A DNA stretch of 64,000 nucleotides from Oculina patagonica (Eukaryota): assembly GCF_052425735.1 (NCBI RefSeq), contig NC_135759.1, positions 28,520,001 through 28,584,000 on the forward strand, written 5' to 3'. Positions 2,652 to 26,300 of the stretch are shown piece after piece. Below the pieces are notes generated by a model. It saw only the letters and a list, made by a program, of their open reading frames with translations. It was not told the origin of the DNA and did not search any database. A program made the position numbers and the translations under genes. Position 1 is the stretch's first letter. Every line of letters starts with the position of its first letter.

Positions 2652-5600
2652 TCATTCAAAAACATGAACGCAGTTGTCAGCTGGATCAGTGACAAGTAAT
2701 TGTCCGTTCTTTGAGATGGCAACAGACCAAGGTACCACATGTTTAGTGAGCTGTTGCCCAACTTCGTTGACAAACTCTCCATCCAGTGTAAACGCTCGTA
2801 GTCTTTGGTTGTCATAGTCACAAACGATCAGGTTGTTAAACCTGTCAACAGCAAATCCAAAAGGACCCTTTAACTGCCTAGCACGAGGTCCCTCACTACC
2901 AATATCATAGAGAAACAAACCTTCCTTACTGAACGCCTTTACGCAATGAACTCCATCATAGGACACAAAAAACATGTCTTGGTGAAAAACAGCGAACCAA
3001 GGGGACTCATCACAGTCTGGAGCACTGAAGGACTGTAACACTTCTGCACCGTCGGGGGAGAGGACCTTTACTGCTTTGTCGCCACTGTCACACACAATCA
3101 TGCAATCATTACGTGCAATAGATAACGCCCACGGAGACTTCAACCGGTCATTGGTGATATGCTTTATAAACTGACAACTTTCGGTGAACACCGAAATGGT
3201 ACCGGAATGGACAACAACGATTTCACCAGACCTGGTGAATGCTACTGAGAACGGCTCGTTAAGTCTCTCGGAGCCATCTCCCTTGTGACCAAATTCTCTC
3301 AAGAAATTGCCATCGGATGTGAACAGTTGAACTCTGTTATTTTGACAGTCTGCAACCGCAATGTTCCCTGTTTTGTTACACACTGCAATGTCAAATGGAT
3401 CGTCAAACTGTCCCCGTCCTGTCCCACCTGAGCCAAATTGATACACATGTTTGTACTGGTGTGCAGACACCTGAACACTCCAGGGACTACCAGTCAGCGG
3501 CTGGCCGTTAACAGCCATGATCACGTGATGCTGCCCAGGGCAATTTGGTGTGAAATGCACAATATATCTGCCATCTTGCTTGTTTTCGATCGTCTTTTCT
3601 AGATCTTCCCCCAACGGAGTCTTTACCGTAACTGCCACTTGGTCGTTCTTGTAATAGCACATTCTCCCCTCGAAATCTTTTGTTACGATGGCAAAATCGG
3701 TTTCTCTGCCAACGTCCCCTCCTTCGAAAGCTTTGCCTTCTGCCACTGATTGCAAAGAATTTGTAAAACTAACAATTACCTGACCCGGAAGTGTCTGCAG
3801 TACAGTTTGAATAGCTCCTTCATTTGTCACGTAACTGACATGCCATGGTCTGTAAATATTCATTTTTTCAACATTCAGAAGTCTTTGACAACGTTCAACA
3901 GCACTCTGTTGTTTCTGTAGAATTTCAAGACTGTTGTTTCTTTTCAGGATGGCTTCACAGTATTCCACGTTACTTTTTAACTGCGTGACAAGCAACCGGA
4001 ACTGTTCTTGCTGCATTGCGTGACTTCTTTGTTGTTCGTCATCAAGGGCATCTAACTCGGCCATGATGGCCATTTCATGTTCCTTTACAACTCGAATCAC
4101 TTGCTCAGCAGTTGTACGCGCATTTTTGCGGGCTAAAGCGATGTCTTCTCTCGTGCTTTTCAAAAACTCAGTTCCCTTTCTCATCTGTTTTTCAAAGTCG
4201 TCGATCTGTGTTTTTACATTCTGGAGAAACTCTTCCATTAGGACCTTGCTTTCATCAGCGGCAAGTTGTGTTTTCACTATGGTGTGACGATGATGCGTTA
4301 TGAGTGCACACTTGTTGCAAATACAGATTTGGCATTCTCGGCAGTAATATTCAAGTTGTTCATGTTCGTGATATTCTTCACCACACATGATAGGTCGGTT
4401 CATCCTCTCCAGCTCTTCTAACTTGAAACCTTTCAGAGATGGAAAACGAGATATCTTACTGAAATTCATCAAAAATTATTCAAAGTACACTCCAACCTCA
4501 ACAAAATTCGTAAAGATACATTTCCTGCAAAAGAAAGAACCCCATCCTTCCCCTTGGGCTTATGTCATTATTTTCCCTGGAGGGACCGACCTCCAGGGTA
4601 ATGGCGACCTTAATAGGGTGATCCTACGGGATGTAAGTAGAGAACAAATTTAAAGTTTAAACAGTAATGCCTCTTTCCATTTGAGAGTAAACCAACTAAA
4701 ACAACTGGCCGGGTTGTTAGAAAGACAATTTTCGCTAATCCTGGGCCTGTTGTTCAAAGTAGGATTAAGTCTTTTGACATTTCAGTGAGGTTCTGTTTTT
4801 ATGTTCTGTCCTCCAGTTTTGATGTCGACTTATTTCAAACTTCACAAAACATAAACAATTAAACACCTTTATACAAGAGAAATTGAACCCTCGATCAACT
4901 TTTAATCCTGGGTTAGTGTGAAACGGCTTTCGAACAATCCAACTCAGGGTTACAAATTAACCGAGATTCTAATTTCCATTGTATAGAAATGTTTAAATAA
5001 TAATGAATTGATGTCTCGAGAGAAAGAACTCAGAGCAAATTCTAAGTTCACAGATGGGACTGTGAAATGAAATGTTTTCACTGCTAATGACGCTAATGGT
5101 TTGTGGTTTTGGCATTGGTCAATACCAAAAGTAAAGGACTAATTACTTAAACAAACATCTGTGCCAACGGCAAGAAGTGGTCAATCGCGCTTCGTACAGC
5201 CGGGCCCTGGGGATAATTTAATTTTCTTTCAAACGAACCTTCAAAGCCGATTTCCTTTCTGGACGCGAAGCTTGATGCCGTCAAGGCATCAAGCTTTTTC
5301 CTGACGTTTCTAATTTCGCTTCCAATTTCATTCAGCTGATCTTTTACGTTGTCTTCATCCTTCTTCCATTGGCTTAGAAGTTCTTTGTAGTGATCTTCAA
5401 TTTCAGGATCCATGCACTCAGTTTCCAGATTGTCGATAGCTGCTCTGTACTGAACTCCTCCCAGTCTCACCAGAGTATCCCGGATGTCTTGCCAGTATGT
5501 GTTAAACGTTGCGTCATCAACCGAAGCGTGCTCGGCATGAGCGTACACGGTGTTTCTAAAATACTTGACACGGGCAATATCTGCTTCACGACTCACGTCT

Positions 5601-5944
5601 GTTAAAGCAGGAAATGTGTCCCAGCCAGTTGCTGGAGAAGGTAAGCCACAGATGTTTCGCAACAGAACCATCAAAAGAGTGATGTCAAAGTCTCTTGAAG
5701 ACACCGAATTAGGGATAGCAGGAAAGAGCTTTCCCCATTGTGTTGGATTAATAATTTTCCTTGTTCTGAGCGTTTGCAACGTGGTTTTATTTCCCGCTAA
5801 GACTGTGTGAAGATTTGCTGGTGGGTGGATGGCATCGAAAGTGCCTCTGAGGGCCTGAGTACCAACATCAACCAGCAGACGACACAAGCGAGCGTAGTTT
5901 GTTGTCTCCTTGGTGGATAACGTTGCTGGTGAGGAACAAGCCAT
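2652..5944 (-). CDS. HEPN(DZIP3-type)-B-box-coiled coil-filamin-NHL protein, copy 1 (RING-less TRIM-NHL-like, ~827 aa; exons 5944-5239 and 4429-2652)
   Basis: Exon 1 has the HEPN R-x5-H motif (RVKYFRNTVYAH) and FDITLLMVLLRNIC, typical of DZIP3-like HEPN. Donor GAAG|GTTCGT at 5239/5238 and acceptor ctgaaag|GT at 4430/4429 are both phase 1. Exon 2 has a B-box (CGEEYH..YYCRECQICICNKC..HHRH), heptad-rich coil, filamin end (VNGQPLTGSPWSVQV) and NHL repeats (GQFDDPFDIAV, NNRVQLF). Confidence 0.88.
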
Positions 5945-6843
5945 TAGAAAAACGTGTCACTGGTTGAAAAATAACAGAAATAGCATACGATTAGGAACGA
6001 TAGTTAAAACTGCGGAACATAAGACCGCCAAAGGCTGTTTTCTTGTTTTTATTGTGCGCGTTTTAACACAATCTAAGAGTTCAAAACTGGCTTGACTTGT
6101 CTTAACATCAACAGTGTCGATCGCGAGTATGAAGGGAGGAATTACGCCTAGCTTTTTCCTACTTCAAAATAAATGTAGCCTAGTATTCATAAGGTAAGTT
6201 TACAAGGTAAAAACAAGCTTTACACCAGTGGCAAGATTCAGGGAGCTTGCCCCCACTTTAAGATACATCCCAAGTCTTACTGCGGTACAATGATCCTTTT
6301 TTATAATCCATCCGAAAACAAGCCTTCCCCCCTAAAAAAGCTCCCCAGATCTTGAACGCAAAAATCCATCCAAAAATAAGCCATCTCGAATATTAATTGG
6401 TCCATGGGCTTGTACAGCTTTTGAGAAAATCGATGCGGTTTTCCATGATTTCTGTTGACTTCGCATCCATACGACCATATCTGCAGTTGTCAAAACCGGG
6501 GATTTCAATAGCAGACAGCAACAGCCAAGAATCACTTTCTAGCTGACGAGACATTCCAAGAATCGAAGTGAAGCCGCACTCGCCTCGCTTTCATATACTC
6601 GACCCAAACTCCTCCGCGCGTTCCTAGTGTAGTGCTTGTCTTGTATTTTAAGTTGTCAGAGAATGCTCAGAGTCCTGTAATGTTTGTTAATAGACTGTAA
6701 GACTTGTTTCGGGCTTCCTATCGTTACGCCTAGAGAGTTTTATCATGTGGTATTCTCGTCTACAGCAAAAAATGTTCCGATACAGTATCCTGTCCAAATA
6801 CCATAACTTGTTGATAATGAAATGTCTAACACAATTTAATTAA

Positions 6844-8126
6844 CCCTCGGCGTGGGGGGGGGGGGGGGAAGAGAATTTACTCTAAACCTCTTAGACCTTC
6901 CAATAGCTGTTTATTCATCCTTTGCTCAAATCTTGATATGTCAATCATGTGTCCACGATATTTGACGTTTCCATGGCAACGTCATAATTACATGCAGGTC
7001 TTGCCAAAAATCGTCATTTTTAACATTTTTCTTTATTTTTCCAGTTTTATGAAACAGAATTGAAAGATTTGTTTATTTTTACATTCCATATGCATTCTGG
7101 CTTGATTTTGCGTCAATTTCCTTTATTTTCTGCTTTTCTAAGAAAATGGTGAAATCCAAGATGGCGGCCCTAATAACGTCACATCCAACAAAAAAATATC
7201 TCATCTTGAAGAGTACGCTACGGGCGTTCTACTCAGTGCAAAATAATCTCACTGCCCCTTAATACAACGAAAACCCTGGGGAGGGGTTCCATCCAACCCC
7301 CCTTTTCAGGCGCGTAGCTGAAGTTTTTGTAAGGGTGTTCGTATTGACAGGAATAATTATTAAGGGGGGGTTATTTAATACGAGCGCCGAAAGCGCGAGC
7401 GTCTAGGGGGATCTGGGGGCATGTCCCCCCAGAATATTTTGAATCTAGAGGCCCGGAAATGCTATTTTCAGCATTGTGTACGTCAAACTCGATGGAGTGT
7501 AAAATAACAGGTATTTTAAGTCATAACAACAATATTTCCGGCGTTTTGTTAACTTGATACATTCATACATACATACCGGCTTAGTACACTAAACGTTTTA
7601 CAAAAGCTTGACGTGTGCTGCAAAGGTTAAGTCCCCACCCCGGCTCCACCTTCAATGTACTAAAAGCGGCGTAAAATCGTCAATATGCACTAAATACACC
7701 ATAGTTAGTACTAACTATGAATGCACGTATCACCTGGGTCCCCCGAAATTGTAATCCCCGCATTTTGTTTATTGATACTCCATTTATCAACTCCCGGACG
7801 CCTGTTAAGGAAATACTTTTTCAGCAATGGGATTATTTTGACTACATATAATACTAGGGCACTAAGATCCATTCTCCTAACAATTTAATACGTTCCCGAT
7901 ACTTTTAGCGTTTTCGTGCAGGGTAATTTAAAAGCTGCAACTCTCAAAGTTTGTTTTCCATTCCCCCACTATTTGCTAAAAGCTGAAAATCAACAGTTTG
8001 TGTTTTCGGTCCTCCATTATTGACCTCCAAAGGGGGTTCGTTCGAACCCCTCGAACCCCCCCCCCCCCCTCCTACGCGCCTGCTTTTCCAATGGTGGGGG
8101 TCTGAATTTGCTTTTACGTCCGGGGG
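6844..8126. mobile_element. TTAA-flanked (piggyBac-like) MITE containing a nested MITE
   Basis: TTAA at 6840-43 and 8127-30; termini CCCTCGGCGT / ACGTCCGGGGG. Confidence 0.65.
7307..8082. mobile_element. Nested non-autonomous DNA transposon
   Basis: TIR CAGGCGCGTAG / CTACGCGCCTG, flanked by a CTTTT duplication. Confidence 0.75.
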
Positions 8127-9478
8127 TTAATAGCTAGTCTGCTGCACCTTTGATGGGATGTGGCGCGGCCAATTGCAGCCCAAGACAACTGATGGAAAAT
8201 ATTAAACATATATCATAGCGCAATTTTCGAAACTAACTTAAGTGTGCACTAAACAAATAATTGTCTGACTTGTTGCTATTCATTAGGCAAACGTATTAAT
8301 TAATGGGTTGGATAAATCCTCTCATACTGTGTTATAACACTTGAAAATATTGTTTTGACCCAGATAACATCAAACTTAAGCACCAAGTTTAGCTTCCTAT
8401 TGGTTTGATCACTGGACTGAAGAACACCTCGGGCGATTTGTCTTTCTCGAATCGACTGGTTCGTTTAAAGGATTGCGATGAATGACAATACTTTAAAACC
8501 TGTGCACTGTTCGGAAAACACGCGAATAGAATATTGCACCAAATTTTGGGTTTGTTTCAAGTTTTGCCATTTCTTATCGCTGGAGCATTTATAAACTGCT
8601 AAATGTTTGCAGTTAAGTCCCGTGATCCAAACGAAGCGTAACATTTATTCATAAATAAAAAATGAATATATTAACTTGATTGCAATTTCGTCGCAAAACT
8701 TCTTAGTTTAACTTCTAAGTACAGAAACCTAGTTTTCTTGTCCCCACCAGATATGTCTGATAACCTGCGCTTTTTCTTGAGCATATTTCAATATCAATCA
8801 ATCATGTCAAATAAAAAAATAACGCCAATAACATACAACAGGCGACCCTAGTTGTCTAATTTGGAAGTTAGTTTGGTGCATGTGATTTGTCGTAAATTCA
8901 GATTACGGAGCCCTGTAACACAATAATTCCCGAAAGAACGGAAGTGACCTCTTAGTCTGAAGCTTTCTAGAACAGTTCTAGAGATGACAACCTTGCCAAC
9001 TTGTACCTGACAACCCTGCCAAATTATCACATTTTTCTGTAACAATTCTGAGCATCGCTCGTTTTGTTGATTAGCATTTGAGTCCCGCTTTAAAAGACCG
9101 AAGTAATAAACGACTTCATGGCATTCACGCCAACAAACCCTGTCGCGTGTTTTTCTTTAAATTCCTGATTTATATATTTGTTGCCACGGGTTCTGGATAT
9201 AGAAAAACAAAATCGGCACTGCTTGTGGGCCTTAAATAAGTATCATCGCTAAATATCACTGTTGAAATTTGCACAGAAGAAATAGAATGTATAGAAGCCG
9301 ACGTGTAAGGTCACATCATGCCTACCATATCATGGTATTATATTTATCCTTTCACGAAATACAAGCGTGAATAAAATTTAAAAAGGCAGAGATACACTAC
9401 GTATCCCCTCTACTTTCATGTTTCGCTAGCACATTAATTAATTAATTAAGGTGCATTTTCAGCAACACCAGGGGATTA

Positions 9479-9788
9479 AAGCCTGGTTTCCATATGATCG
9501 CAGACGATCGCAATGGATCGCAGACGATCGCAGAATTGTAGGTTCTGCGATCTGCGATCATATGGAAACACACTTTTGCGATCGTTTGCGATCGTCTTAT
9601 CCCATAATATTGATAATCGATCCCATCATTCAACACTTCTGCAATCGTCTGCGATCATTTGCGGGGGGGATCATATGGAAACAGTTCGCTCTTCGATCTT
9701 TGCGATCACACGGTTCAGTAAATTTCTGTGATTTTGCGATCGTCTGCGATCCACTGCGATCGTCTGCGATCATATGGAAACCAGGCTT
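9479..9788. mobile_element. Palindromic MITE (Harbinger-like)
   Basis: TIR AGCCTGGTTTCCATATGATCGCAGACGATCGCA at both ends, internal GCGATC repeats, TA/TWA flanks. Confidence 0.8.
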
Positions 9789-10090
9789 TAGTTACGATTT
9801 AGATCGATTTATAACAACCCGTTTACGAAACCGTGAAAGGGCCGATCATGCGATCTGTTTTCGGCATCCACATGTCGATTTGAGAACAAGGAGGAAAACT
9901 GTTACGCGATTTCTCAAAGTTGTTATCGATAATAAGGAGCACATAAACTACAAATGCGATACTAACCTGCAATCTCACAAATCGTGTGAACAAATGAAGG
10001 AAACGCTGGGATGAGCGACCGCTACTTCGTTGTCGATTCGTTGAATCACAAGATCAACTTTGCTTCTAAGGTCACACAAGGTTAGAAAGC

Positions 10091-10703
10091 CACAGGCGGC
10101 CCAAGCTCACAATTAGAGGAGTTAAAATATTTAACATAATTGTCTTTTGTAACCGTTCGCGAAACGTGACTCTCGACCGGCAGCATATGGAGGTGTTGTG
10201 TTACAACGGTTCTCGTTTATAAAGGTTTGTATGGGAGAATACGCTTTCGAATTTATAGCTAAATATAATGCGATTTTGACAATAAAATCAACTTACCTCA
10301 ATGTCCTGTCGTTACTTGTCTGTTGTTACCTCGGTTCTCAGGCCGATCCGAGGCGTTTTAAGCGAGTTATGCAATTTTTGGTTTCCACTACTTCTTCTTA
10401 GCAGTGGAAACCAAAAATTGCATAACTCGCTTAAAACGCCTCGGATCGGCCTGAGAACCGAGGTAACAACAGACATAACGACAGGACATTGAGGTAAGTT
10501 GATTTTATTGTCAAAATCTCATTATATTTAGCTATAAATTCGAAAGCGTATTCTCCCATACAAACCTTTATAAACGAGAATTAACCGTTGTAACACAACA
10601 CCTCCATATGCTGCCGGTCGAGAGTCACGTTTCGCGTACGGTTACAAAAGACAATTATGTTAAATATTTTAACTCCTCTAATTGTGAGCTTGGGCCGCCT
10701 GTG
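10091..10703. repeat. Near-perfect ~610-bp palindrome (two ~300-bp arms, ~7-nt loop at ~10393-10399)
   Basis: 10402-10703 is the reverse complement of 10091-10392, with a few mismatches and a 4-nt indel. Confidence 0.95.
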
Positions 10704-11202
10704 ATCAACTTTGCTTCAAAGGTCACACAAGAGTTGAGCATCATGTGATCTGCGTCACGCAACGTTAAAATATGGTACCTTTGCTGATTATGTTCCTCAT
10801 TTATAGTCCAATGACCGAAAACTGTAGATTTCTCTCTGCCAAAACCGCCATATTATCCAACATGCCTATTGTAACAGCACTCAGTCTGAAAACAGTTCTA
10901 TCTTAATAGTTTTAGGAATTTTATTTATGTTTTGAAGTATTTTATGCTCTCTTGACACAAGTAGTGGAATCCTGATTACTTGCACTGCTTGCACCTCCTG
11001 ACCGAGTGATTGATCCGAAGCTAAATTTGAAAATAAGATAACCATCGTTTCAGTTTAATATGCCGTAAAATTGCCGATAAAACAGCTTTATAAGGACTTA
11101 TGAGTGGCCAGTAATGGGCTCCTGGAGTGGCTTATGGGGAAGCATATACATCAGTCATTTTCCGTGAGGCCGGGGCTGGGAGTTACGAATCAGCGCTCTG
11201 GA

Positions 11203-11613: not shown

Positions 11614-11865
11614 CGCTCTGGAACAACATTGAAACTCTAATAAGAGATGTATTGTACTGGAGAAAGCTTCTCTAAATACTTAACGCTTTGATCTGCACTT
11701 AATTTGCCAATTTTTTGTTAATTGCCTATTTTGCAATTTGAGGGTAGTGGGGAAGGGGGTGCAAAGCACGTTACGGTGTTTTTGTTACGGTGCAAAGCAC
11801 TACAGTGTAATCAATATAATGGTTCTGCAGATACCACTATTTAAAATTCCCACCACGAAGTCATG

Positions 11866-12539: not shown

Positions 12540-12573
<34 letters not shown>

Positions 12574-12857: not shown

Positions 12858-15800
12858 TCACTGCAAAACATGAACACAGTTTTCGCTAAAATCTGTAACA
12901 AACAGCTGTCCAGTTGTTGACACTGCAACAGACCCAGCACACTTAAGTCCCGTGAACTGTTCTTTTATCGTGTTGACAAACTTTCCATCCAGTGCAAATA
13001 CCTGAAGTCTGCTGTTACCAGAGTCACAAACAATCAGGTTATTGAACTTGTCAATGGCGATTCCAGTTGGATAACACAACTGTCCGTCACCAGACCCTTT
13101 GCTGCCAATATCATACAGAAACACTCCATCGTTACCAAACACCTTGACAACATGAGCCAAGCCATAGGACACAAAGAAAGTATCCTCGTGGTAAGCAACG
13201 AACAACGGGGGCTCATTGCAATCTGGAGCACTGAACGACTGTATCAATTCTTTACCGTCAGAGGAGAGGACCTTGATTGACTTGTTACCCCAATCAGACA
13301 CCACCAAGCGGCCATCACAAGCAACTGTCAAGAATCTTGGATTGTTCAAGTGTTCGTTAGTGATGTTTTCAACGAAGTGACCACTCTCGGCAAAATAATA
13401 CATTCCGCAACAATCAATGATAATGACGTCACCAGACCTGGTGAATGTTACTGAAATGGGTTCAATTAGTTTCTCAGCAGATCCCCTCTGACTAAATTCT
13501 GTTAAATAACTACCATCTGAACTAAAAAGCTGTACTCTGTTATTTTTAGCATCCGCCACTGCAACGTTTCCTGTCTTGTCACTTACTGCAATATCGCAGG
13601 GATTTTCAAATTGTCCTTGTCCTTTCCCACGTGACCCAAAAGAAGCTACAGTTTGGTACCGATGTGGGGACACGTGAACACTCCATGGACTACTAGTCAG
13701 CGGGTAACCATTAACTGCGACTGCCACGTTGTAGTGTCCATCACAATCTGGTCTATAAGACACGATATACTCGCCGTTTTCTTTGTCTTCAATCTTGAAG
13801 CAAAGCTCCATTCCTGTTGGGGTCTGAACTTTTACTGTGATCTGATCATCGTCATTACAACACGGTCTTCCTTCTGAATCTTTCGTTGTAATTGTAAAGT
13901 TAGATTCTCGTCCAACTTCTGCCTCTTTCAGACCTTTCCCTGTCGCCACTGATTGCAAAGGATCAGTGTCACGAATAACCACGTGACCTGGAACTGCTCG
14001 TCGTACTCTCTGAACTTCTTCTTCATTTGTCTCGTACCTAACGTGCAGTGCTTTGTAAATGTGAATTTTCTCTGAATGTAGTAGGCCTTTATGTCGTTCT
14101 GTGACATCTTGCTGCGCTTGTAGAATTTCAACGTTTATGTTTCTTTCTAAGATGGCTTCCCAAGTTTCTGAAGATGCTTTCAACTGCGTGACAGACAGCT
14201 TAAAGTGTTCTTGTTGTATTGCGTGACGTCTTTGTTCTGCTTCTTCAAGTATGTCTAATTTAGTTACCATAGCAATCCCGTGCTCCTTTAATACTCGAGT
14301 GAGTTCTTCAACAGTTGTCAGTACTTTGTTTCGTGCTTCGGCAATTTTTTCTCTGCTTTTCCTTAACAATTCTGTCATTTTCTCTATTTGTATCTCACGC
14401 TCAGCAATTTCTTCCTTCATTTCCTGAAGAACCTCCACCATCTTTAGTTTTTGTTGGTCAGCGGCTTGTTGGATACCCACCTTGGTGTGATGGGTATGAC
14501 GTGTTTGTCCACACTTGTAACAAATACAAACTTTGCAGTTCTGACAATAATAATCGAGTGGCTCATTCTCGTGATATTTCTCTCCACACATGATAGAGGT
14601 ATTCAACGATTTTTCCAGCTTCGAGCTTTTACCTTTTCAGGCGGAATAAAAAAAATAAAGCATTCATTATAATGAAGAGAGAATGTTATCATGGATATAC
14701 CATTAGCTATCAGCATTATCTCACAACTTACTCCAACAGAAGAAACTAGTGTATTTGCCGAAACGTCGGATTTTGGTTTGTTTCAAACACATTTTTTGTT
14801 TACTATGACACCTGGTTACAAATCTAGTTTTTAAAAAACAGAACAAGCATTTACAAAAAAAGAACTTACCTAACTAGTACTAAGATTACTAACTGGGAGG
14901 GGGCTGACCAGTTAGTTGTGCGTGGCCGAGGAGTTGAACTTGGGATTGCCTAAACAAGATGGGGGTCGGAGGGGAGTCAGACAAGTTTAACACTCCTTTT
15001 AACCCTTTTCCCCTTTTCCCTTCCCCCCCCCCCACCCCCCAGATCAGCCCCAGCAATCCACTGCCGGAACCCATTTGTACTCCGGGGTGCGAAGAAGCAC
15101 CGGGAAAGTTAGATGTCTTGCACTCACTCACTGAATAAAAAAAAAATACGACTTCCGCCTAAACCCATAAACAACGAAAAGTTTTAGTTTAGGATTTTGT
15201 TTATCAGAAAAGAAAGAAGAACTGTATCGTACGATGAAGCTCAGGGCTAAGTGTTCAGGAACAAAAAGTGATTTCTGGATATCAATTACTACTACTGGTC
15301 ATCGCGTTTCCTACATAGACTACCCTGAGATAAACATAAATGCTTGAACTAATCTAGAAAATCAAATTTCGGTCATATATACAAGTTATACCTTCATCAC
15401 CAGTTTTTTTCGTAGATGGCGCATTTGATGCTGTCAATTGCAAGTTATCGAGCAGTTTCCTGACGTTTTTGACCTCGGATCCGATCTCTTTCAGTTCATG
15501 TTTGATGTCTTTTTCATCCTTCAAGTATTGGCTTATAAGTTCTTTGTAGTGATCCTCAATTTCAGGATCCATGCACTCAGTTTCCAGATTGTCGATAGCT
15601 GCTCTGTACTGAACTCCTCCCAGTCTCACCAATGCGCCTGAGATCTTTTGCCAGTATGCGCTGAATGTTGCGTCATCAATCGAAGCGTGCTCTGCGTGAG
15701 CGTACACAGTGTTTCTAAAACACTTCACACGAACGATATCCGCTTCACGACTCACGTCTGTAATAGCAGGAAGTGTGTCCCAGCCAGTTGTTGGAGAAGG

Positions 15801-16103
15801 TAAGCCACATATGTTTCGGAAAAGAACCATCAAAAGAGTGATGTCAAACTCCCTGGAAGACACCAAATTGGGGATGGCAGGGAAAAGTTTTTCCCATTGT
15901 GTTGCATTAATAATTTTCCTTGCTCTGAGTGATTGCAAGGTTGTTTTATTTCTAGCCAAAACTGTGTGAAGGGTTTTTGGTGCATGGATGTCATCGAATG
16001 TGCCTCTGAGGGCCTGGGTGCCGACATCAACCAGCAGACGACACAAGCGAGCGTAGTTTGTTGTCTCCTTGGTGGAGGAAGCTGTTGGTGCTGCACCAGC
16101 CAT
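12858..16103 (-). CDS. HEPN-B-box-coiled coil-filamin-NHL protein, copy 2 (~828 aa; exons 16103-15392 and 14632-12858)
   Basis: HEPN motif RVKCFRNTVYAH. Donor GAAG|GTATAA at 15392/15391; acceptor after a T-rich tract, ctgaaaag|GT at 14633/14632. Phase 1 and in frame. Same domain order as copy 1. Confidence 0.88.
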
Positions 16104-17059: not shown

Positions 17060-18446
17060 TAAGTTTCTGGCGAAATTCCGCTGGATTTCGCTGGGTAATT
17101 GTCAAAGATTTGCGTTATTTTGGTTTTTAGCACCACATCGGTTTAATCTCTCAGTATTTTGCTGAAACTCCGTAACTAGCTTTTATAGGTACACCTATTC
17201 AGCGTTCCTACTGCGGAGTATGATTGGCAGGTTTGCTCCGTGACGGTGTAGATGGAAACTGAATTTGATAGATAAGACTTCCCCACACTTGATGAAGCTG
17301 GATGTTGGAATATTGTGACATAACGGCGTTATATTTTGCATTCTTTATAGTATAATTATACTGAACATTTTCGTAGGTAAATGGTCAATATATTGACGAA
17401 AGACCTTCGTCTTTCATTGGCAAGTGGTACTATAGGGTATCATCAAATGTCAAAACCGAAAAAAATAAACTTTCGAAACTGTCTGAAGATCCATGCAAAT
17501 TATATATTTTACACGTAATGAACGTAGAAATACTTTGTAAATCGTTAAAATAAGAAAGGAAAAAAGATAAAAGTAGGCTAGGGCATAGAGCCTGCACTGA
17601 CATCTTGGCACTTCACACGGTAAAGATGAAATAGATCACTTTGGGATGTTCGTTGCAAGTAGATTTAATTATATGCATGAGCAGAAATGTCGATACAAAA
17701 CAAACTTGTGTTCAGAGAAATCAAATAAAAGTGAAATTAATGGGTGAAATAATTATACAAAACCATAACTGCACGTACTTTATGATATGAAGACCTAGCG
17801 TTGCAATGAATGTCATAATAGTACTTCACAGAATAATGAACTGAATGAATACATTAATACGAGATTTGATAAACCAGCATCAGTCATTAGTCGAGACTGG
17901 GATATGCCGTATTCGCCATAGGTCGAGGTTGAGTATTAAAACTCGGACTTTCGAGATTGTGGGAAATCTCGATAGATATATACACACAACACCTACAGTA
18001 CACACCGCGCACAAGCAAGATAAGTGTTGCAGCATAAAGCATTTGAATCTACAAACAAACCTGAATTTATCACGCCCAAACGGGAAGTCCATCGACCGTA
18101 CAATAGAAAGCAGTGAAAGGAAACAATGCATTCACCACTTCAGAGGAAAACTGGGGCAAGTCTCATCTCGCAGTCGCTTGTGGGACCGTCACTGGGGACA
18201 AAACAAACGACGGGAAGCCATTTTGTCCTCAGTAATGTACCACACAATCGGGAGAATAAGTGCCAGTTTGGCAAATCTTCGTTGAAGCACTCGAAAAGTT
18301 TCCGAATTATTTCATCCAATCAAAAACCAGCGCGAGCGCTCACGCGTGCCCGGAAAGCAATTGCGCGAACAATTACGTCATGTTGCTTAGCAACTTTAGG
18401 GACGAACACCGCGGGCTCAGTCCCGCCCCGGAGGCGAGATTTTAAT

Positions 18447-20322
18447 AGGCCTTATTCGTATTCCCCGACGGCCCTGGGACGAGAGCCTTCTGAACATGAA
18501 TGCGAGGCTAATGCGGGGTACTTTGCACAAATTGCAAAGAAACATATGGAAAATTGCGACTGGGTTGCCGAAAAACCTTAAAAATTATAAACGCTTTGAG
18601 GATCTAGAGCTAGTCGGTGATCTGCAGGCTAGAGGGATACCAGTGTCAATCAGAAAAAATTAGAAGATCTGGTAGAACTGACCGAGAAGGCTAACAAATT
18701 TACACTGAATCGTCGGGAACGGTTTCGAGTCAGCAGTACTTGCGAAGTAAACTTCAACACCAGGTTATGTTTCCAGCTAATCTCTTATTTTTATTTTCAG
18801 TGTACATCCGACTTAAGTGAGGGATTAAACTTTCCTTGAGGATATTTATATTGCTATTTAAGAAAGGGGTTCAGAAGAGGGAACTTGCTATATTAAATTT
18901 GATCACGCACACAATCTCAGTTGTTTATTTTTTTAAACAATAGCTACTGTAGCACTGTGATAACTTTTTTCACTGCAAGAGCATGAAATGAGCGTGAAAC
19001 GATTAACAGCATCACTTGAGCCAAATGAAAATCTAGCCTTTTAATCAAAAATTGTGTGTAGTTAGCTTCAAAACGAATTTGTAAATTGCTTTGTAATTTA
19101 GTGAGTTTGCCGATCTTGATGTGCGTGCGAGATTTTAATCTGAAACATCCAGTTCTGTTTCAGACCATTTTCGTGAAAGAATATTAAATAATAATAATAA
19201 TAATAATAATAATATCTTTTATTTAGACACGATAAATTTACAGCATAGCTGATGTGGTCGTGTTTAAGTTACCTAAGAAATAATCATAACAAAAATAACA
19301 CTAAGACAAATACGAATACTAACTAAACTTATTTACAATATAAAAGATATTTACAATATTTACATGCACTAGCCTATTTACAATTTTCTATTTACAATAT
19401 CGAGATTTTTGAGGGCCTTCAGTTCCCTATTGAAGGATGCTAAGCTTTCTTTAGCCCTCCAGGCATTGGGCAAATTATTCCACCTTTTTGCGCCAATGTA
19501 TGAAACTGATTTCATGATCATTAAACTATCGACATTCTCACTTAACTGAGCTAAGAAAATTATCTTTTATTCGAACATTCGATGATTTAGGGGCAAAATG
19601 AATTTGGAAGTTTAGATTTTGTGATTTTAAGTCTTTCTAGCCAGTTTGCATGTACCGGCGTGCGAGAACATTAATTAAATTTACTAGTTCTTTTAAAGAC
19701 GTTTTGGCAGCAGCACAGAAACATAGCAGTCAAACTGTGAAAGAAATCAGTTCAGTGGAATTAAAAGCTATTCTTTTTACTAAACAGTGAGAGCATTTAA
19801 CAGCAAACGAATTTGTAAATAATTAATGCGCCATTTCGTTCAGTTGTTTTTGTCCATATGCCGATCAAAATATGTAGTCAATACGCAGCATCTCTCAGAC
19901 ATTTATTCTTATTTTTTTAAAATAATAGCAATACAAATCTCTCCAAGTTAAGTATATTGCCTCTGGTAAGTCGGATGTACAATCAAAACAAATATTAACA
20001 GATTGGGGTCATTACCTTGCGACTCGATGACTGACTTGCACTCCCCCGATTCGACTACTTCAAGGAAAATTTGTTAGGCTTCTCGGTCAGTTCTACCAGA
20101 TCTTCTATTTTTTTCTGATTGACACTGGTATCCCTCTAGCCTGCAGATCACCTCCTAGCTCTAGATCCTCAAAGTGTTTATTATTTTTAAGGTTTTTCGG
20201 CAACCCAGTCGCAATTTTCCATACGTTTCTTTGCAATTTCGAGCAAAGTACCCCGCATTAGCCTCGCATTCATGTTTAGAAGGCTCTCGCCCCAGGGCCG
20301 TCGGGGAATACGAATAAGGCCT
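18447..20322. mobile_element. Non-autonomous DNA transposon with ~245-bp TIRs (AGGCC...GGCCT ends), carrying a nested LINE 3' fragment
   Basis: 18447-18690 is the reverse complement of 20078-20322. AAT on both flanks. Confidence 0.85.
19188..19530 (-). mobile_element. 3' end fragment of a CR1/L2-type LINE with a (TTA)n tail
   Basis: Minus strand encodes SVSYIGAKRWNNLP, followed by a 3' UTR and a tandem ATT tail (TAA run at ~19190-19213). Confidence 0.7.
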
Positions 20323-20324
20323 AA

Positions 20325-21362
20325 TAGTTATTATAAAAATTGTAAAAAGTATAAAGTTAAAAACTATCTAATTAAAATTGATAGGGGTATAAATATGAAT
20401 ATAATTAATATAATTAACAGTAATAGTTGACGGATATAATTAAAACTACTTAAAAATATTAAAAATATGTGTAATCTTGATTTTTATTTGCGATCATGCA
20501 GGCTTCCTTCAGAAAGCTTATGTTCTTGATAGTGTTCTTGTGGCGGCGCTGTTTTAGGAGCTTCTTAAAGTTCTTTAGGGACGGGGACTCTTTGAGTGAG
20601 GTTGGAATGAGGTCCCACGCAAGAGGACCTCTATATCGTAAGGAGTTTCTGCCAGTGTCCATGTTAAATCTCGGTAGTACAAAGTGATTACTGTTTCTAA
20701 GATTATAGTGTGGATTGGCTATACTAAAGAGGTTTGAAATTTTATCAGGAGTTATGTTACTATTTACTTTGTACATTAGGATAAGTAATTTCTTTTTATA
20801 TTGAAATGATAGTGGCTCCCATCCAGTCGCTTCTAGGGCATCTTGATGCGATATGTCCCATGGTAGCCTATGGATGATTTCAGCTGCCCTTACATGAATA
20901 TGTTCAAGCTCGTTCATCAAAGATGGTGTGCTAGTGCCCCAAACTAAGCTGCAATAGGTAATAGTTGGCATGATGCTGCTAAAGTATATTGTTTCTAGTG
21001 TGCTTGCTGGTAGGTATTTAAATCTTTTGAGCTGCTTTACTTTCTTTCCAAGAGATTTACAGAGGTGCTCCAAGTGACTGCTCCAAGAGAGCTGGAAGTC
21101 ATTGATAACCCCCAGACATCTTGTTTCAGGGACGACATTCAGGAACTTATCTCCTAGTTTGATGGGTCTCAGTGGACCACAGAAAAATCTGTGCGATATG
21201 ATCATAGCCTCGGACTTCCCGGTGTGTATAGTTAGTTTGTTGTTTCTGCACCAGAGCGAAATCTCTGATAGGGCTCTGTTTAAACCGCCGACTACTTCAT
21301 CTACATTGTCACCAATGACATGCAGCGTCGTGTCATCAGCATACAGTTCCAGATTGCCCTCA
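20325..21362 (-). mobile_element. 5'-truncated CR1/L2-group LINE (RT C-terminal half)
   Basis: LELYADDTT at ~21350, continuing into ORF 20459-21205 (CLGVIND..LSWSSHL, YCSLVWG, HYNLR, RGPLAWDLIP). Confidence 0.88.
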
Positions 21363-22192
21363 TGTTACCACAAGTGACTACGAGATAAAATTCGCCCCAG
21401 TTTTCTTCTTAATATAATAAAGGCTGTCGCAAAGTACAGAGGGGCACCCAGGAAGGGTTTAAGTTAAAATCGGACGAAGAGCAATGATTTATTTCCAGAA
21501 ATAGTTACTGTAATAATTTTTAATAATATTTCTAACATATATCTAAAGACGGTAATTAGGTAAAAGGCAAATTACAACTAACAAAATTGGTGCGGTTTTA
21601 GTAAACAGTTAATCGATGCACTAAAGAACGTAGTGAAATCTAACATGCCTGTGTTTCGGAAACAAAAAGCTAGAAGTTAATGAGTATTTTTACCAGGAAT
21701 CGAAAGAAATTACTGGCAATCAGAAGACTTGAAAAAACTTTCCGGGGAACCTACAGAAAACACTGATAAGACAAAGTCCTGAACGTATCTGACGACCCTG
21801 ACTACTTTTGGATTTAGCACTCTTATGGTCGATCCAGTTAAGTAAAGAGAAATTGCTTTGGATAAAGATTCTCAGAAGAAATTACACAAAAAATAACTTA
21901 TATTACATCGAAACATAGTAAGTTTTTGAATAAGTTTTTTCCAAAAGCCCCTCAGATCAGTTTGGTCGTGCAAACAAGTCATGTTAAGTTAAAGGTCGCT
22001 TCATCAGTTCGTCGTTACAACCGGAGAGTCGCGACTTTAACTTTAGGTGGGGGGGGGGGGGGGGGTCGTTGCTTTTGGAACTTCACAGTTTATTAGTTCA
22101 TTGCGAAAAATAATGTCAACATCACGCATAGTTTTGCGAATTTCGGGCGAATGCCCCGATTTTTTCGGAATGACCTTCATCATTACATGATG

Positions 22193-23017
22193 TAGTCCAG
22201 TCCCTGAACTCTCTCTTCCGAGCGCCCTTTAAAGGGTTTGTACCTAGGCGCGAGAAGAGAGAGTCCAGGATACCTTGCATGCGCATGCTCAGAATGAAGC
22301 AATCAGAAGCGAGGAGTGTGGCGTCACTTGCTTGGGACGCGCGCGCTAGATTAAAAATGCTCGCTCAAATGACAAATTCAACTACGCAACCAAGTGCACG
22401 AATAAATGCAAGAAAAAACTGTGCTAAATTGCATCCAAAGCCAATTCAATAAAAAGATGTACTAGGAATAGTTGACGTTTTGGCTGTTAGCTTTTAGTAG
22501 ACACTGATTGACAAGCTAGGCTTTTTTACAGTTATAAACAATTATTGGATGAGGTTTTTGTTCGGCTGATAACACTTAACCGAGACCTTGATTATTCCAA
22601 ATATCACACATACCGAATCTAATAATTGTTTTATTATACATTGTTTTCTGGAAAAGAAAGTTATGACAAACGATTTCACCTTGTTTCAAAAATTGTGCTA
22701 TAAATTCCTGATGGTCGTCCTACTAAATCGTGGAATAGTTCCTTCCCAATTTTTGTTAGTCATTTTGTGTTTCCCGAGACTTAATTGTCCAGCAATTTTT
22801 GAACTTTGGTCAATCTATTTCTCGTTTGATGAAGTGAATCGACGAACTATGAATTTCCTTCGCCGCCAGATGCCTGACACATTGATCTTGGAAATCATGC
22901 AATGCGCGCGTAACCTACAGCGCTAGCGTATGTAAGTTATCCTGGACTCTCTCTTCTCGCGCCTGGGTCCAACCCCTTTAAAGGGCTCGCAGAAGAAAGA
23001 GTTCAGGGACTGGACTA
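22193..23017. mobile_element. Non-autonomous TIR element with TAG...CTA ends and a 9-bp TSD (Academ-like)
   Basis: ~80-bp TIR starting TAGTCCAGTCCCTGAACTCT. TSD TACATGATG at 22184-22192 and 23018-23026. Confidence 0.85.
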
Positions 23018-23330
23018 TACATGATGGTGCTGAAACAGCGCTTATAAAAGTCGTCTTCATCCCGCGTAAATCTTTTTCTTTTGAATTTTCTATTGCTTTG
23101 TTCCGCAGATGTGGCTCTTGTTGAGGTAAGATGTAGCGATAAGGCAAGATAGGTAATTTCTGGATAAGGAGATGTAGTGATGAAGGTAAACGTTAAAAGA
23201 TGTTCTATGCCAATATAAACGAAGGGAGCTAAACTAAAGAAAATGGGTACTATACAAGTTTTGTTTGGAAACGCTACTAGGAATCTTCTAGGGAAACAAA
23301 GATGTAACTTGGGATGCTTGATGATTTCAG

Positions 23331-26300
23331 TTACTTAAATATTTGAACATAGTTTTTGCTGGTGTCAGCGATAAATAGCGCCCCAGTAGCTGATACAGCA
23401 ATAGACAAAGGGCATTCGAGCCATTTAAGGCCGAAAATGGATTGTCCTTGTATCGTGTTTACAAATTTTCCTTCCAGTGTGAAAACTTTCAGATTACTGT
23501 TATCCCCGTCACATACTATTAAATTGTTAAACTTGTCGACGGCGAGTCCAAGAGGCTTACTTAACTGTCCGTCACCAGACTTCTCACTGCCAACATCACA
23601 CAGAAATTCCCCCTCTTTATTAAATACTTTCACACAATGCGCCGCAGGGTAAGACACAAAGAACATGTCTTGGTGACAAACAGCAATCCACGGGGACTCA
23701 TCACAGTCGGGAGCACTGAGGGACTGTAGCAATTCTGTACCTTCAGGGGAGAGGACCTTGACCGTCTTAGCAGCTATCTCGGACACCACCAGGCGGCCAT
23801 CACAAGCAACAGTCAAGCGGACTGGTATTTTAACGTGTTTGTTGGTGATTGTTTTGATAAACTGACCCTTCTCGGTAAAACAAAGCATTGCACTGGAAGC
23901 AACAATAATGACGTCACCGGAATTAGTGAATGCAACTGAAGTGGGATCGCTTCGTTTCTTAGCAGCTGGTCCCTTCGGAACAAACTCAGTTAAGCACTCA
24001 AAATATCGATTAAAGAGATGTATTCTTTGTTTCTTTCGATCAGCCACTGCAAAGTTCCCGGTCTTACTATCTACTGCAACATCGCAGAGGTCTTTAAATT
24101 TTGGGTCTCCTTTCGCACGTGACCCAATATAATATACAAACATGTATTGATGTGGACAAACCTGAACGCTCCAGGGACTGCCAGGCAGCGGTTGATCATT
24201 AACTGCGATCATCACTTGATGATCTCCATGACAATTTGGAGTGGAAGTTACACTATATTTACCATCTCCTCTGACTTCAACCTTGTTCTTGAGGTCCTTT
24301 CCGGATGGAGTCTGAATTTCTACTGTTATCTGATCGAATGCATTATAACACTGTTTTCCATCTGAGTCATTTGTTACGATTGTAAAGTATCCTTCTAAAC
24401 CAACTTGAGCTTTTAGGTTTAACCATTTCACTACTGACCGCAGAGGATTCGTGTTACTTACATCAACTAGACCTGGAACTGTACTTCTCACATTCTGGAC
24501 ATACTCTTCATTTACCTTGTAATGAACATGCGATGGTTTGTAAATGTCCATTTTTGTTGACTTTAGGCTGTTTAGGAGACCTTTACACCTTTCAATGGCA
24601 GCTTGCTGTGCTTGTAGAATTTCAAAGCTGATGTTTCTTTGTAATATTGCCTCGCAATTTTTCACAGACGCTTTCAGCTGGGTAATGGACGTTTGAAAGT
24701 GCTCCAATTGTATTGCGTGGTATCCTTTTTCTCTTTCTTCAAGAACATCTAACTCGTACTCCATGGTCTTCTCGTGTTCCTTCAAAACTCGAATGAGTTC
24801 TTCGGCGGTTGTCAGTAACTTGTTACGTGCTGCAGCAATTTTTTCTCTGCTCTTCCTTAACAATTCTGTCGTTTTTTCCGTTTGCATCTCTCGCTCATCA
24901 ATTTTTTCCTTCATTTCCTGTAGAACCTCCTCCATCTGTTGTTTCTGTTGTTCGGCGGCTTGCTCGATATCGACTTTGGTGTGATGAGTATGACGTGTTT
25001 GTCCACACTTGTCACAAATGAAAACTTTGCATTCTTGACAATAGTAATCGAGTGGCTCATTCTCGTGATGTTTCTCTCTACACATGGTGGAGCTCTCCAA
25101 AACCTCTTCCGTCTTGAAGCTTTTATCTTATCGAGCACAACAAAAATATGTTAAACAAAAGCAACGTTGCTACAGCTTACATAAGCTGCTGAAACAGACA
25201 AACGGGGGAGGCCGGGTACTCCCCAAAGTGAACTGTACTGGGAGGCTCCGCCCGAAAAAGATACCTTTTTTAGACTGGAGGTATAAAAAAGGGTAGAGAT
25301 TTCACGAGTTGGAGTATATACAAAGGGTAGTGAAACTGCCATTTTATAGGTACTCTCAAAGAGACCCACCAAATGGTCGATTCACTTATAAATGAAAATA
25401 CTTAAAAGCATTAAGGGGTTATTCAAGTGAACAGGCCGTATCCAGACTTTTCGGACAACAGAAGCAATTGCAAAGTTCCAAAACGCAAGCCACTTTATAG
25501 GGGTCAATTTTCGAAATCTTGAAGGCCCAGAAATACTCTTTTTGGGGTAGTATTAGCAAAAGAAACACTTCTTTCACATTTACTTACTTACTAGTAATGC
25601 AAAGCCTCTTACAGGAACAGGAAACAAATATTAATAAATTCAAAATTTTTACTGAAGCAAATGCCTTGGTTCGCCTGTTACTAGCAACAACCTTGGTGGA
25701 AAATTAACTTAACTACTAAACATTGGTCACCTTGCCTGTCACATGAGCAGCTGTACACTTTATATTGATAAAAAGAAACCTAGAAAACAATTTGAACCTT
25801 TACAACTAACCTTCATCGCTGGTTTCTTTTGCGTTAGTCACAGTTGATGCTGCTAAATCATCAAGCTTTTTCACAACATTTTTTATCTCTGTTCCAATCT
25901 CTTTCAGCTCATCTCTAATGTTTCCCTCATCCTTCTTCCACTGATTGAGAAGTTCTTTGTAGTGATTTTCAATTTCAGGGTCCATGCACTCAGTTTCCAG
26001 ATTGTCGATAGCTGCTCTGTACTGAACTCCTCCCAATCTCACCAGAGTGTCCCGGATGTCTTGCCAGTATGTATTGAATGTTGCGTCATCAACTGAAGCG
26101 TGCTCAGCATGACCGTACACGGTGTTTCTAAAATACTTAACACGAGCGATATCCGCTTCACGACTCACGTCTGTTACAACAGGAAGTGTGTCCCAACCAG
26201 TTGCTGGAGAAGGTAAGCCACATAAATTCCGCAACAAAACCATCAAAAGTGTTATATCAAAATGGGCTGTTGACACTGAAGTAGGGATGGCTGGAAAAAG

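Follow-up and report, generated by a model that had tools for sequence, protein, structure and literature searches.

Organization of the locus and of the gene family

The window, i.e. the whole stretch of 64,000 nucleotides of Oculina patagonica DNA that was analysed, carries on its minus strand three spliced genes in tandem (ORF list and Pfam), each with the domain order HEPN_DZIP3, B-box, putative coiled coil, filamin and six-bladed NHL propeller. The HEPN_DZIP3 ORFs lie at positions 5147-5944 (copy 1), 15354-16103 (copy 2) and 25806-26516 (copy 3), and the B-box/filamin/NHL ORFs at 2652-4472, 12858-14606 and 23331-25100, respectively, all on the minus strand. Exon A of copy 1 (5239..5944; Pfam PF18738, E = 3.9e-65) starts with the ATG at 5944 and ends in phase 1 at 5239, where the donor was read in the sequence; it encodes HEPN_DZIP3 (about 5387-5821, with an intact R-x5-H motif) and a short helical linker. 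It is followed by an 809-base GT..AG intron (4430..5238), inside which a high-copy repeat is found at about 4766-4993, and by exon B (2652..4429), in which Pfam places the B-box, the filamin repeat and the six NHL blades, with the putative coiled coil after the B-box (NHL domain, 2655-3455; stop codon, 2652-2654). The splice joint 4429|5239 (mapped at 4426/5236 with 'cut +3'; CT..AC on the plus strand) was present in RNA-like contigs from two studies (runs X1 and X2), where most of the intron was uncovered and depth was seen only over the repeat; DNA run X15 spans the whole intron. The same junction is that of the annotated 827-aa protein: the HEPN exon and exon B of copy 1 are spliced into one mRNA. 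A small extra exon between the two was also considered and was ruled out by their direct joining in the RNA-like contigs and in the annotated protein. Exon B of copy 1 shows 12 synonymous and 17 nonsynonymous variants between public runs, none of them at the pentapeptide positions described below; as it is not certain where the contigs come from, these variants were left out as population evidence.

The two other genes are built alike. Exons A and B are at 15392..16103 (Pfam E = 7.7e-64) and 12858..14632 for copy 2, and at 25811..26516 (E = 3.6e-63) and 23331..25126 for copy 3; the 3' ends of exons A were inferred from the junction in the annotated proteins, and the 5' ends of exons B were inferred as well. 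Their NHL domains occupy 12861-13658 and 23334-24146. The annotated proteins (827, 828 and 833 aa for copies 1, 2 and 3) contain PF18738, B-box, filamin and NHL. In all three copies, PF18738 is matched over profile positions 1-144 of 144 with 212-218 bits (cut-off 27) and the B-box profile PF00643 with 30-34 bits (cut-off 24.1); PF00630 (filamin) and PF01436 (NHL) matches are also present, and the putative coiled coil is a Glu/Lys/Gln-rich stretch of about 165 residues between B-box and filamin. In none of the copies did Pfam match a RING family in either exon, and the annotated proteins have PF18738, not PF00097.

These genes belong to a large family. In the O. patagonica genome, close NHL paralogues number at least 27, most of them arrayed on contig C2, and there are at least 150 HEPN_DZIP3 exons, many of which are upstream of ORFs of about 1500 aa. 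Frameshifts or stops are present in five family copies. A 1:1 orthogroup of the kind found for copy 1 was sought for copy 2, but a single relative elsewhere exceeds 62% identity (at 70%), followed by a swarm at about 60%. In the NHL tree, RING-bearing relatives are interleaved with HEPN-bearing ones. As in immune-receptor families, there is lineage-specific tandem expansion with birth-and-death turnover.

Concerted evolution of the HEPN segment

The near-identity of the HEPN exons over long stretches, on which the first-pass annotation had built its picture of a conserved effector and a hypervariable sensor, is real: identity among the three copies is 82-89% at the protein level and 84-88% at the DNA level, and uninterrupted matches extend over 26-48 residues and 55-76 bases. 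The motif R-N-T-V-Y-(A/G)-H, which fits Rx4-6H and is predicted to be catalytic, is found in all three copies and in homologues. The NHL domains are indeed far more divergent (51-55% identity), but this is not peculiar to NHL: the B-box, coiled coil and filamin of copy 1 are 49-56% identical to those of the other copies (ten-gene means, 45-61%), so that the contrast is one of HEPN against everything else, and not of HEPN against NHL.

The implicit view of the first-pass annotation was that stronger purifying selection on a catalytic domain is sufficient, without gene conversion, to explain why HEPN is so similar. Omega is indeed lower in HEPN than in any other domain (0.23 family-wide, 0.11-0.26 among orthologues). 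This view nevertheless seems very improbable, since synonymous sites follow the same pattern. Among paralogues, most HEPN pairs had a dS of 0.15-0.55 and most exon B pairs one of 0.7-2, so that HEPN was 2-4 times lower, and the p-distance at fourfold sites was 0.29 for HEPN against 0.44-0.53 elsewhere in the same genes, yet among orthologues the HEPN and NHL dS values were about equal (0.28/0.28, 0.32/0.34 and 0.48/0.56). Synonymous constraint as the cause of the low HEPN dS was ruled out by these normal orthologue values; moreover, with values of about 1 between distant copies, HEPN dS shows no ceiling. A topology shared by HEPN and the rest of the gene was rejected by the AU test (9e-9 and 5e-62). 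Lastly, the HEPN DNA of copy 1 is 92% identical to that of one paralogue in the same genome (L031) and only 84-86% to that of its own orthologues. The homogenised tract of copy 1 (5325..5944, minus strand; 85-92% DNA similarity to in-genome paralogues) begins at the ATG and ends near codon 207; in the DNA comparison, neither the sequence upstream of it nor the linker tail nor the intron aligned to in-genome paralogues.

Judging from substitution rates and trees, HEPN is kept similar by two processes, purifying selection (omega of about 0.1-0.25) and a gene conversion that is limited to the HEPN coding segment. HEPN similarity due purely to recent gene conversion, which the first-pass annotation had named as evidence against its own reading, was thus largely borne out, with a contribution of purifying selection as well. 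By the same comparisons the HEPN similarity is inflated by concerted evolution, the heads being alike largely because gene copies overwrite one another.

Variation on the top face of the NHL propeller

The 18 blade pentapeptides quoted in the first-pass annotation were all recovered exactly and aligned blade by blade; in copy 1, an aromatic residue follows the blade-initial proline in six blades out of six (F,F,W,W,F,W). The AF2 model of the copy 1 NHL domain (pLDDT 93.4) has 24 strands arranged in six four-stranded blades, and its best PDB matches by Foldseek were the NHL domains of TRIM2, TRIM3, TRIM71, Lin41 and Brat (TM 0.84-0.91). By definition, the top surface of an NHL propeller is the side with the BC and DA loops, and in Brat it serves as the platform for RNA (PMC4015489); here, it was assigned from the DSSP loop topology of the predicted model, i.e. 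from strand and loop order rather than solvent exposure. The top centre was defined as 46 structure-based positions, 24 being pentapeptide flanks and 22 BC-loop residues. A rough count over pentapeptide flanks and BC loops gave it a net charge of -6 in copy 1, -1 in copy 2 and +3 in copy 3, and the same sequence proxy ranged from -10 to +7 across the family. For comparison, TRIM71 has an Arg at Pro-1 in four blades (phmmer against PDB sequences, with blades aligned out of register).

Site models were fitted to 30 NHL sequences with our own GY94 implementation, of which the M0 log-likelihood equalled that of IQ-TREE. The log-likelihoods were -14944.3 for M7, -14918.8 for M8a and -14908.0 for M8 (-14960.4 for M1a and -14949.0 for M2a), M8 having an omega_s of 1.40 with p = 0.138, i.e. 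about 14% of sites. M8 was better than M8a with p of about 1e-6, a value that is optimistic, like all p-values and confidence intervals of the codon tests, because branch lengths and topology were fixed save for one scale factor; in addition, deep synonymous divergence is saturated (dS above 1 on deep branches). When coiled coil, filamin, HEPN and NHL were fitted on 20 identical taxa (the B-box was too short), M8a was rejected for NHL only (p = 0.002). This did not make the propeller faster overall: its whole-domain omega (about 0.2 among orthologues and 0.4 family-wide) does not exceed those of coiled coil and filamin, also about 0.4.

As anticipated in the first-pass annotation, the high-omega sites were not randomly distributed on the propeller model. 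Among the 26 sites with P > 0.8 in the omega > 1 class, 18 are in top loops, four are first residues of strand A, at its top end (22 for the two together), and one is in a bottom loop (Fisher test, top versus bottom loops, p = 0.0015; pentapeptide positions versus the rest, p = 1e-6). Such sites are concentrated in the BC and DA loops and at the start of strand A, especially at Pro-2, -1, +1 and +2, and 17 of the 26 are among the 46 top-centre positions. Recombination can inflate site-model tests. The two NHL halves do have different best topologies and each rejects the other's tree; with its own tree each half kept the signal (p = 0.016 and 1e-4), and 25 of the 26 sites recurred. On these codon models, the top centre appears as the only part, among the four domains fitted, with a faster-than-neutral site class family-wide, and these proline flanks and BC loops form the predicted specificity-determining surface.

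The pattern varies strongly between lineages. Tree-wide, omega at the pentapeptide positions was 0.98, indistinguishable from 1. It was 0.10-0.20, below the domain average, for copy 1 and its orthologues, 0.83 for the copy 2 lineage (with a confidence interval spanning 1), 0.55 for the copy 3 lineage and 0.93 for the L002 clade. Values clearly above 1 (1.4-2.1) were restricted to paralogues of recent duplication that lie outside the window, i.e. to three young clades at 2.08 (p = 3.5e-4), 1.93 (p = 0.001) and 1.41 (p = 0.02), the rest of those domains being at about 0.3; the signal is also seen in an unsaturated young pair (L036/L039, dS of about 0.16). None of the lineages of the three window genes had a partition omega above 1 (0.20, 0.83 and 0.55). 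The diversifying selection proposed from the window therefore holds at the family level, with a class only modestly above 1, and does not extend to the lineages of the three window copies. It is contradicted for copy 1, the one with the aromatic ring: when coral species are compared, exactly those sites are under strong purifying selection, and no pentapeptide varies within the copy 1 orthogroup. This lineage has preserved the ring F,F,W,W,F,W without change in at least eight sequences from several corals, together with a surface that is acidic by sequence count. Taken together, these rates show a top face that seems to evolve episodically, being remodelled after duplication, as in recent Oculina duplicates, after which it can freeze.

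Part of this pattern would also be expected if the top loops of redundant duplicates merely drifted, the genes being old sub-functionalised housekeeping or developmental regulators, similar to the RNA regulators TRIM71 or Brat but with a nuclease head, and non-immune. The near-neutral values tree-wide, in the copy 2 lineage and in the L002 clade agree with such relaxed constraint, copy 1 does resemble a conserved single-function gene, and ligand-binding top faces differ among ordinary human TRIM-NHL paralogues too (PMC9634614). We nevertheless hold it to be rather unlikely, because in the copy 1 lineage no class is more constrained than these same sites, which are hence functional rather than free, because the three young clades exceed 1 in otherwise constrained domains, because M8 outperforms M8a, and because tandem arrays, frameshifted copies and birth-and-death turnover fit conflict-type families. 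That the omega > 1 class and its location would be artefacts of saturation, misaligned indel-rich loops and paralogue recombination appears less probable still. The DA loops do contain indels, and the deep saturation, the discordant halves and the fixed branch lengths all point that way; but the strongest sites flank a near-invariant proline and conserved strands or lie in BC loops of 2-4 residues, so that the alignment is well anchored, the signal survives a separate tree for each half and is present in the unsaturated pair, and coiled coil, filamin and HEPN show nothing with the same taxa and analysis.

A candidate recognition family on a TRIM-NHL body plan

The best explanation, which we regard as reasonably probable, is that of a coral-wide tandem family of RING-less TRIM-NHL type, with a predicted RNase HEPN head, an NHL recognition module and episodic remodelling of its top face. 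The class VII TRIM-NHL proteins (TRIM2, TRIM3, TRIM32, TRIM71/LIN-41, Brat and Mei-P26) share with it the order B-box, coiled coil, filamin and six-bladed NHL, and the NHL folds of TRIM2, TRIM3, TRIM71 and Brat superpose on the coral one at about 28% identity. As in human TRIM-NHL proteins (PMC9634614), the top face varies between paralogues. The coral proteins differ in having HEPN_DZIP3 in the N-terminal place, without a RING, and in forming dozens of tandem paralogues where TRIM-NHL proteins are 3-5 conserved genes; moreover, the copy 1 top centre is, by sequence count, acidic and aromatic instead of Arg-rich as in TRIM71. DZIP3/hRUL138-like HEPN domains with Rx4-6H in the N-terminal 'effector' place form large tandem arrays in anthozoan genomes (PMC3710099, PMC8260672, PMC9646362). 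The cnidarian and bivalve HEPN expansions (HEPN-NACHT, NLR-like) have the HEPN family, motif, N-terminal position and arrays in common with the coral genes, but continue with NACHT and repeats instead of B-box, coiled coil, filamin and NHL, and the fusion of HEPN to the latter set is not among the architectures in that HEPN-expansion literature (PMC3710099, PMC8260672, PMC9646362).

We infer an immune role from analogy and from the literature on HEPN_DZIP3 expansions. As in immune-receptor families, an omega > 1 class is located on the candidate ligand-binding surface of the model, family-wide and in three young clades, and not in the window lineages. The proteins may act as a sensor-effector set, in which the NHL top face would be presented by a coiled-coil dimer and the binding of its ligand would regulate the HEPN RNase or set its location; the probable use would be defence, whether against viruses, transposons or other non-self. 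Each of the three window copies would then have a different ligand, that of copy 1 being old, conserved and unlikely to be bound via a TRIM71-like basic surface. The acidic top centre of copy 1 (net -6 by the rough count) agrees with the earlier suggestion that a TRIM71-type RNA may not be the ligand.

More tentatively, corals may possess an uncharacterised intracellular recognition system on the TRIM-NHL body plan, with varied NHL faces and HEPN RNase heads kept interchangeable by gene conversion. In such a system, some faces would be frozen for ancient ligands and others remodelled under positive selection after duplication, making it the NHL-propeller counterpart of TRIM5alpha or of fungal HNWD receptors, with RNA cleavage as output. 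Primate TRIM5alpha (B30.2/SPRY) combines a constant N-terminal effector with positive selection at ligand-contact positions of its recognition domain. The same combination is found in the fungal HNWD/het-e NLRs with WD40 propellers, for which diversification combined with concerted evolution among paralogues is reported (PMC1805685); in the coral genes, the concerted evolution is on the effector (HEPN) segment and not on the repeats. The coral family also differs from HNWD and TRIM5alpha in that omega is modest, the copy 1 lineage is frozen and recognition is a predicted function.

The HEPN segment is a worked example of how gene conversion restricted to one domain makes an 'effector' seem better conserved than it would be under selection alone. 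NHL propellers are known chiefly from a few developmental regulators, in which they are conserved modules that bind RNA or protein. In some coral lineages, the predicted binding face of the propeller resembles the variable surface of immune receptors, and the propeller is joined to a predicted nuclease in place of a ubiquitin ligase. The 46 top-centre positions are where specificity should be sought, and the opposition between the frozen copy 1 and the fast-evolving young duplicates is a natural contrast usable for ligand finding. If the inferred function is true, corals would have, next to the NLR-, TLR- and lectin-type receptors, a further candidate class of innate sensors.

A HEPN exon spliced to a B-box-to-NHL exon

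The three tandem genes (copies 1, 2 and 3) lie on the minus strand of the window, which covers 28,520,001-28,584,000 of Oculina patagonica contig C2, with a spacing of about 10 kb. In each, the upstream exon (exon A) gives a full-length match to HEPN of the DZIP3/hRUL138-like kind (PF18738, E 1e-63 to 1e-65) and the downstream one (exon B) encodes a B-box and a filamin repeat with a helical region of about 165 residues between them, followed by NHL repeats. All three copies keep an intact R-x5-H motif in the HEPN domain, and a Pfam search of exons A and B found no RING in any of them. For copy 1, a phase-1 donor and acceptor are readable in the sequence, and contigs from two public runs, from different studies, join position 4429 to 5239, skipping 809 bases bounded by GT..AG on the minus strand. 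In both runs the intron is mostly uncovered, its sole depth lying over a repeat (about 4766-4993). Coverage by a DNA run is complete across the intron and lacks the joint. The annotated 827-aa protein of copy 1 has a junction identical to the read-supported one, and the annotated proteins of copies 2 and 3 (828 aa and 833 aa) have the same architecture. These contigs show that the HEPN exon and the B-box-to-NHL exon are joined in one mRNA.

The repeat at 4766-4993 looks like a high-copy short interspersed element that is also transcribed somewhere: contig depth rises there from about 21 to 700-2500 in a DNA run and is 535 in an RNA-like run, and many loose contig ends fall at 4861-4919. The interval separating copies 2 and 3 contains an open frame of 248 aa (20459-21205, minus strand) without a Pfam match; since it resembles the C-terminal tail of a LINE ORF2, it probably represents part of a retrotransposon lying within the array. 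An intact-looking non-LTR retrotransposon is found on the plus strand at 57076-62241, with an ORF1-like frame (310 aa, coiled-coil, no Pfam match) followed by a 1299-aa ORF carrying AP-endonuclease, reverse transcriptase and zf-RVT domains. The window also contains, at 38701-39996 on the plus strand, an open frame of 431 aa that looks like a glutamate carboxypeptidase II-like exon and combines Peptidase_M28 with a transferrin-receptor-like dimerisation domain; just downstream of it are 161 bases of N (40381-40541). A von Willebrand factor A domain is encoded by an open frame of 342 aa at 46893-47921 on the minus strand.

Concerted evolution of the HEPN segment

The first-pass annotation had opposed a conserved HEPN effector to a hypervariable NHL region. 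The HEPN domains of the three copies are indeed 82-89% identical in protein sequence, with identical runs of 26-48 residues, versus 51-55% for the NHL domains, but the B-box, coiled coil and filamin repeat have diverged as much as the NHL. Averaged over ten paralogues with two intact exons, identity is 0.84 (HEPN), 0.61 (B-box), 0.45 (coiled coil), 0.54 (filamin) and 0.52 (NHL), so that the real contrast is between the HEPN segment and the whole remainder of the gene. Introns and flanks of the three copies do not align with one another.

The difference extends to synonymous sites. Most paralogue pairs have a synonymous divergence of 0.15-0.55 in HEPN, versus 0.7-2 in the remaining domains of these genes; at fourfold-degenerate sites of conserved residues, the difference is 0.29 in HEPN versus 0.44-0.53 elsewhere. 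Special constraint on HEPN synonymous sites would give such a pattern, but it should then also be seen between orthologues. For the copy 1 orthologues, taken from other coral assemblies, dS is about equal in HEPN and NHL (0.28/0.28, 0.32/0.34 and 0.48/0.56) and omega is similar (0.11-0.26 for HEPN, 0.16-0.26 for NHL), so that HEPN synonymous sites are not under special constraint. Nor is there a ceiling on HEPN dS, since distant HEPN copies reach about 1. The HEPN alignment rejects the exon B tree and the reverse (AU p 9e-9 and 5e-62). The HEPN DNA of copy 1 shares 92% and 90% identity with two paralogues at a distance of about 300 kb and 89% with a third at about 60 kb, but only 84-86% with its own orthologues; exon B shows the opposite ranking, with 81-86% to orthologues and 65-73% to paralogues. 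Likeness to the paralogues runs from the ATG to near codon 207, that to the orthologues extends into the flank and the intron. From these results, we conclude that the HEPN coding segment, and it only, is subject to concerted evolution by gene conversion, added to purifying selection. Conversion as the source of the HEPN likeness, a possibility that the first-pass annotation named as counting against its own proposal, is thus largely borne out, with a dS that is lowered but not "very low".

In a DNA run, depth over the copy 1 HEPN exon (5336-5905) is 135-620 at at least 95% likeness, versus a baseline of about 20. This excess implies some 7-30 near-identical HEPN segments in the sequenced genome, which is in line with homogenisation by gene conversion. 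In another coral, locus L056 has a second HEPN exon (L056:6751-7488) 3.2 kb downstream of the copy 2 orthologue, so that the tandem layout is common to both species; this downstream HEPN, and not the orthologue's upstream one, clusters with that of Oculina copy 2 (bootstrap 77), which hints at HEPN exchange between adjacent genes.

Selection on the NHL top surface

The NHL domain of copy 1, as modelled with AlphaFold2 (81-sequence alignment, pLDDT 93.4, pTM 0.92), has six four-stranded blades, and its nearest solved folds are the NHL domains of TRIM2, TRIM3, TRIM71, Lin41, Thin and Brat. In blades 1, 2, 3 and 5, strand A begins with the blade-initial Pro; in the other two, 4 and 6, this Pro precedes the DSSP strand by one or two residues. 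All 18 pentapeptides first read around it are exact and align blade by blade. The top surface is defined as the BC and DA loops and is the RNA-binding platform in Brat (PMC4015489).

Site models (GY94/F3x4, our own implementation, whose M0 likelihood matches that of IQ-TREE to the second decimal) were fitted to 30 NHL sequences of Oculina paralogues and orthologues. The lnL values were -15255.90 for M0 (omega 0.415), -14960.4 for M1a, -14949.0 for M2a, -14944.3 for M7, -14918.8 for M8a and -14908.0 for M8, with omega 1.40 at 13.8% of sites and 2dlnL of 21.6 for M8 versus M8a. Deep dS is saturated. Because topologies and branch lengths were not optimised beyond one scale factor, p-values and confidence intervals here and below are optimistic. 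With loop classes derived from the predicted model, 18 of the 26 sites with posterior above 0.8 are in BC or DA loops, four are at Pro+1 or Pro+2, at the start of strand A, one is in a bottom loop and three are elsewhere. The enrichment is significant for top versus bottom loops (Fisher p=0.0015) and for the 24 positions Pro-2, -1, +1 and +2 versus the rest (p=1e-6). The variable sites are thus gathered, as first proposed, on the top face (22/26), including positions that flank the blade-initial Pro. On an identical 20-taxon set, M8a was rejected by NHL only (p=0.002), and not by coiled coil, filamin or HEPN. Recombination within NHL is likely; since the two halves of the domain favour different trees, each was refitted on its own, and the signal was kept (p=0.016 and 1e-4) with 25 of the 26 sites recurring.

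The strength of selection depends on the lineage. A top centre was defined a priori as the 46 sites of the BC loops and the pentapeptide flanks. With synonymous branch lengths fixed, its omega is above 1 in other loci of the family: 2.08 for L036/L039 (p=3.5e-4) and 1.41 in the L041 clade (p=0.02); in the L031 clade it is 1.93 at the pentapeptide positions (p=0.001). It does not differ from 1 in the L002 clade (0.93) or for the copy 2/L056 pair (0.83, CI 0.56-1.20), and is below 1 for the copy 3/L057 pair (0.55) and the copy 1 orthologues (0.20; 0.10 at pentapeptide positions alone). Outside the top centre, omega of the domain is 0.28-0.42 in all clades; in the copy 1 orthogroup the top-centre sites are below that remainder. 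All eight sequences of this orthogroup and its sister carry F, F, W, W, F, W immediately after the six Pro, and a sequence count makes their top centre acidic (net -4 to -8); other paralogues have 0-3 aromatics after these Pro and net charges of -10 to +7. The surface singled out initially is therefore a putative specificity surface, which some duplications left remodelled and others frozen; copy 1 is of the frozen kind. Diversifying selection, as in immune receptors, is supported for the L036/L039, L031 and L041 clades but not for the three copies from which it was proposed.

Relatives and possible function

The window genes share the body plan of class VII TRIM-NHL proteins but miss the RING, and are therefore not strict members of that class. 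RING-bearing TRIM-NHL genes with NHL domains about 50% identical to that of copy 1 do exist (L011, L016, L017, P0024, P0082 and others); their ORFs span 727-765 aa, and the annotation calls some of them TRIM45-like or TRIM2-like. In the NHL tree these relatives are interleaved with HEPN-bearing clades, which suggests repeated head replacement, between RING and HEPN, on one body.

In five paralogues (L032, L034, L037, L038 and L042, on Oculina contigs C2, C13 and C7), exon B is spread over two or three frames by a frameshift or stop; the HEPN exon is still open, being split in L034 only. Such copies may be pseudogenes or errors of the assembly, and they fit a birth-and-death turnover. On contigs C9 and C7, dozens of single ORFs of 1350-1650 aa begin with a more distant HEPN_DZIP3 match (44-49% identity) and are probably of the HEPN-NACHT type known from anthozoans.

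HEPN_DZIP3 expansions are already known, with published fusions to TPR, RING, ankyrin, CARD, NACHT, Death and LRR; fusion to B-box, filamin and NHL is absent from the published architectures of such expansions that we examined. What the present analysis adds is the pattern of top-face selection, its lineage dependence and the domain-limited concerted evolution of HEPN, for which no publication was found within the limited literature searched.

By these comparisons, a candidate binding face is where paralogues differ and selection acts, and the HEPN segment is exchanged among copies. TRIM coiled coils dimerise. HEPN RNases have an Rx4-6H site (PMC3710099), NHL top faces bind ligands (PMC4015489, PMC9634614) and in the expanded NLR-like genes of anthozoans and bivalves the effector position is occupied by HEPN_DZIP3 heads (PMC8260672, PMC9646362). 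A dimer formed through the coiled coil would capture a ligand on its NHL face and so control or localise RNA cleavage by the HEPN head, with viral or transposon RNAs, host mRNAs and non-RNA ligands as candidate targets; the acidic, aromatic face predicted for copy 1 argues weakly against phosphate-backbone binding of the TRIM71 type. The paralogue array would in this way provide many specificities to one shared effector.
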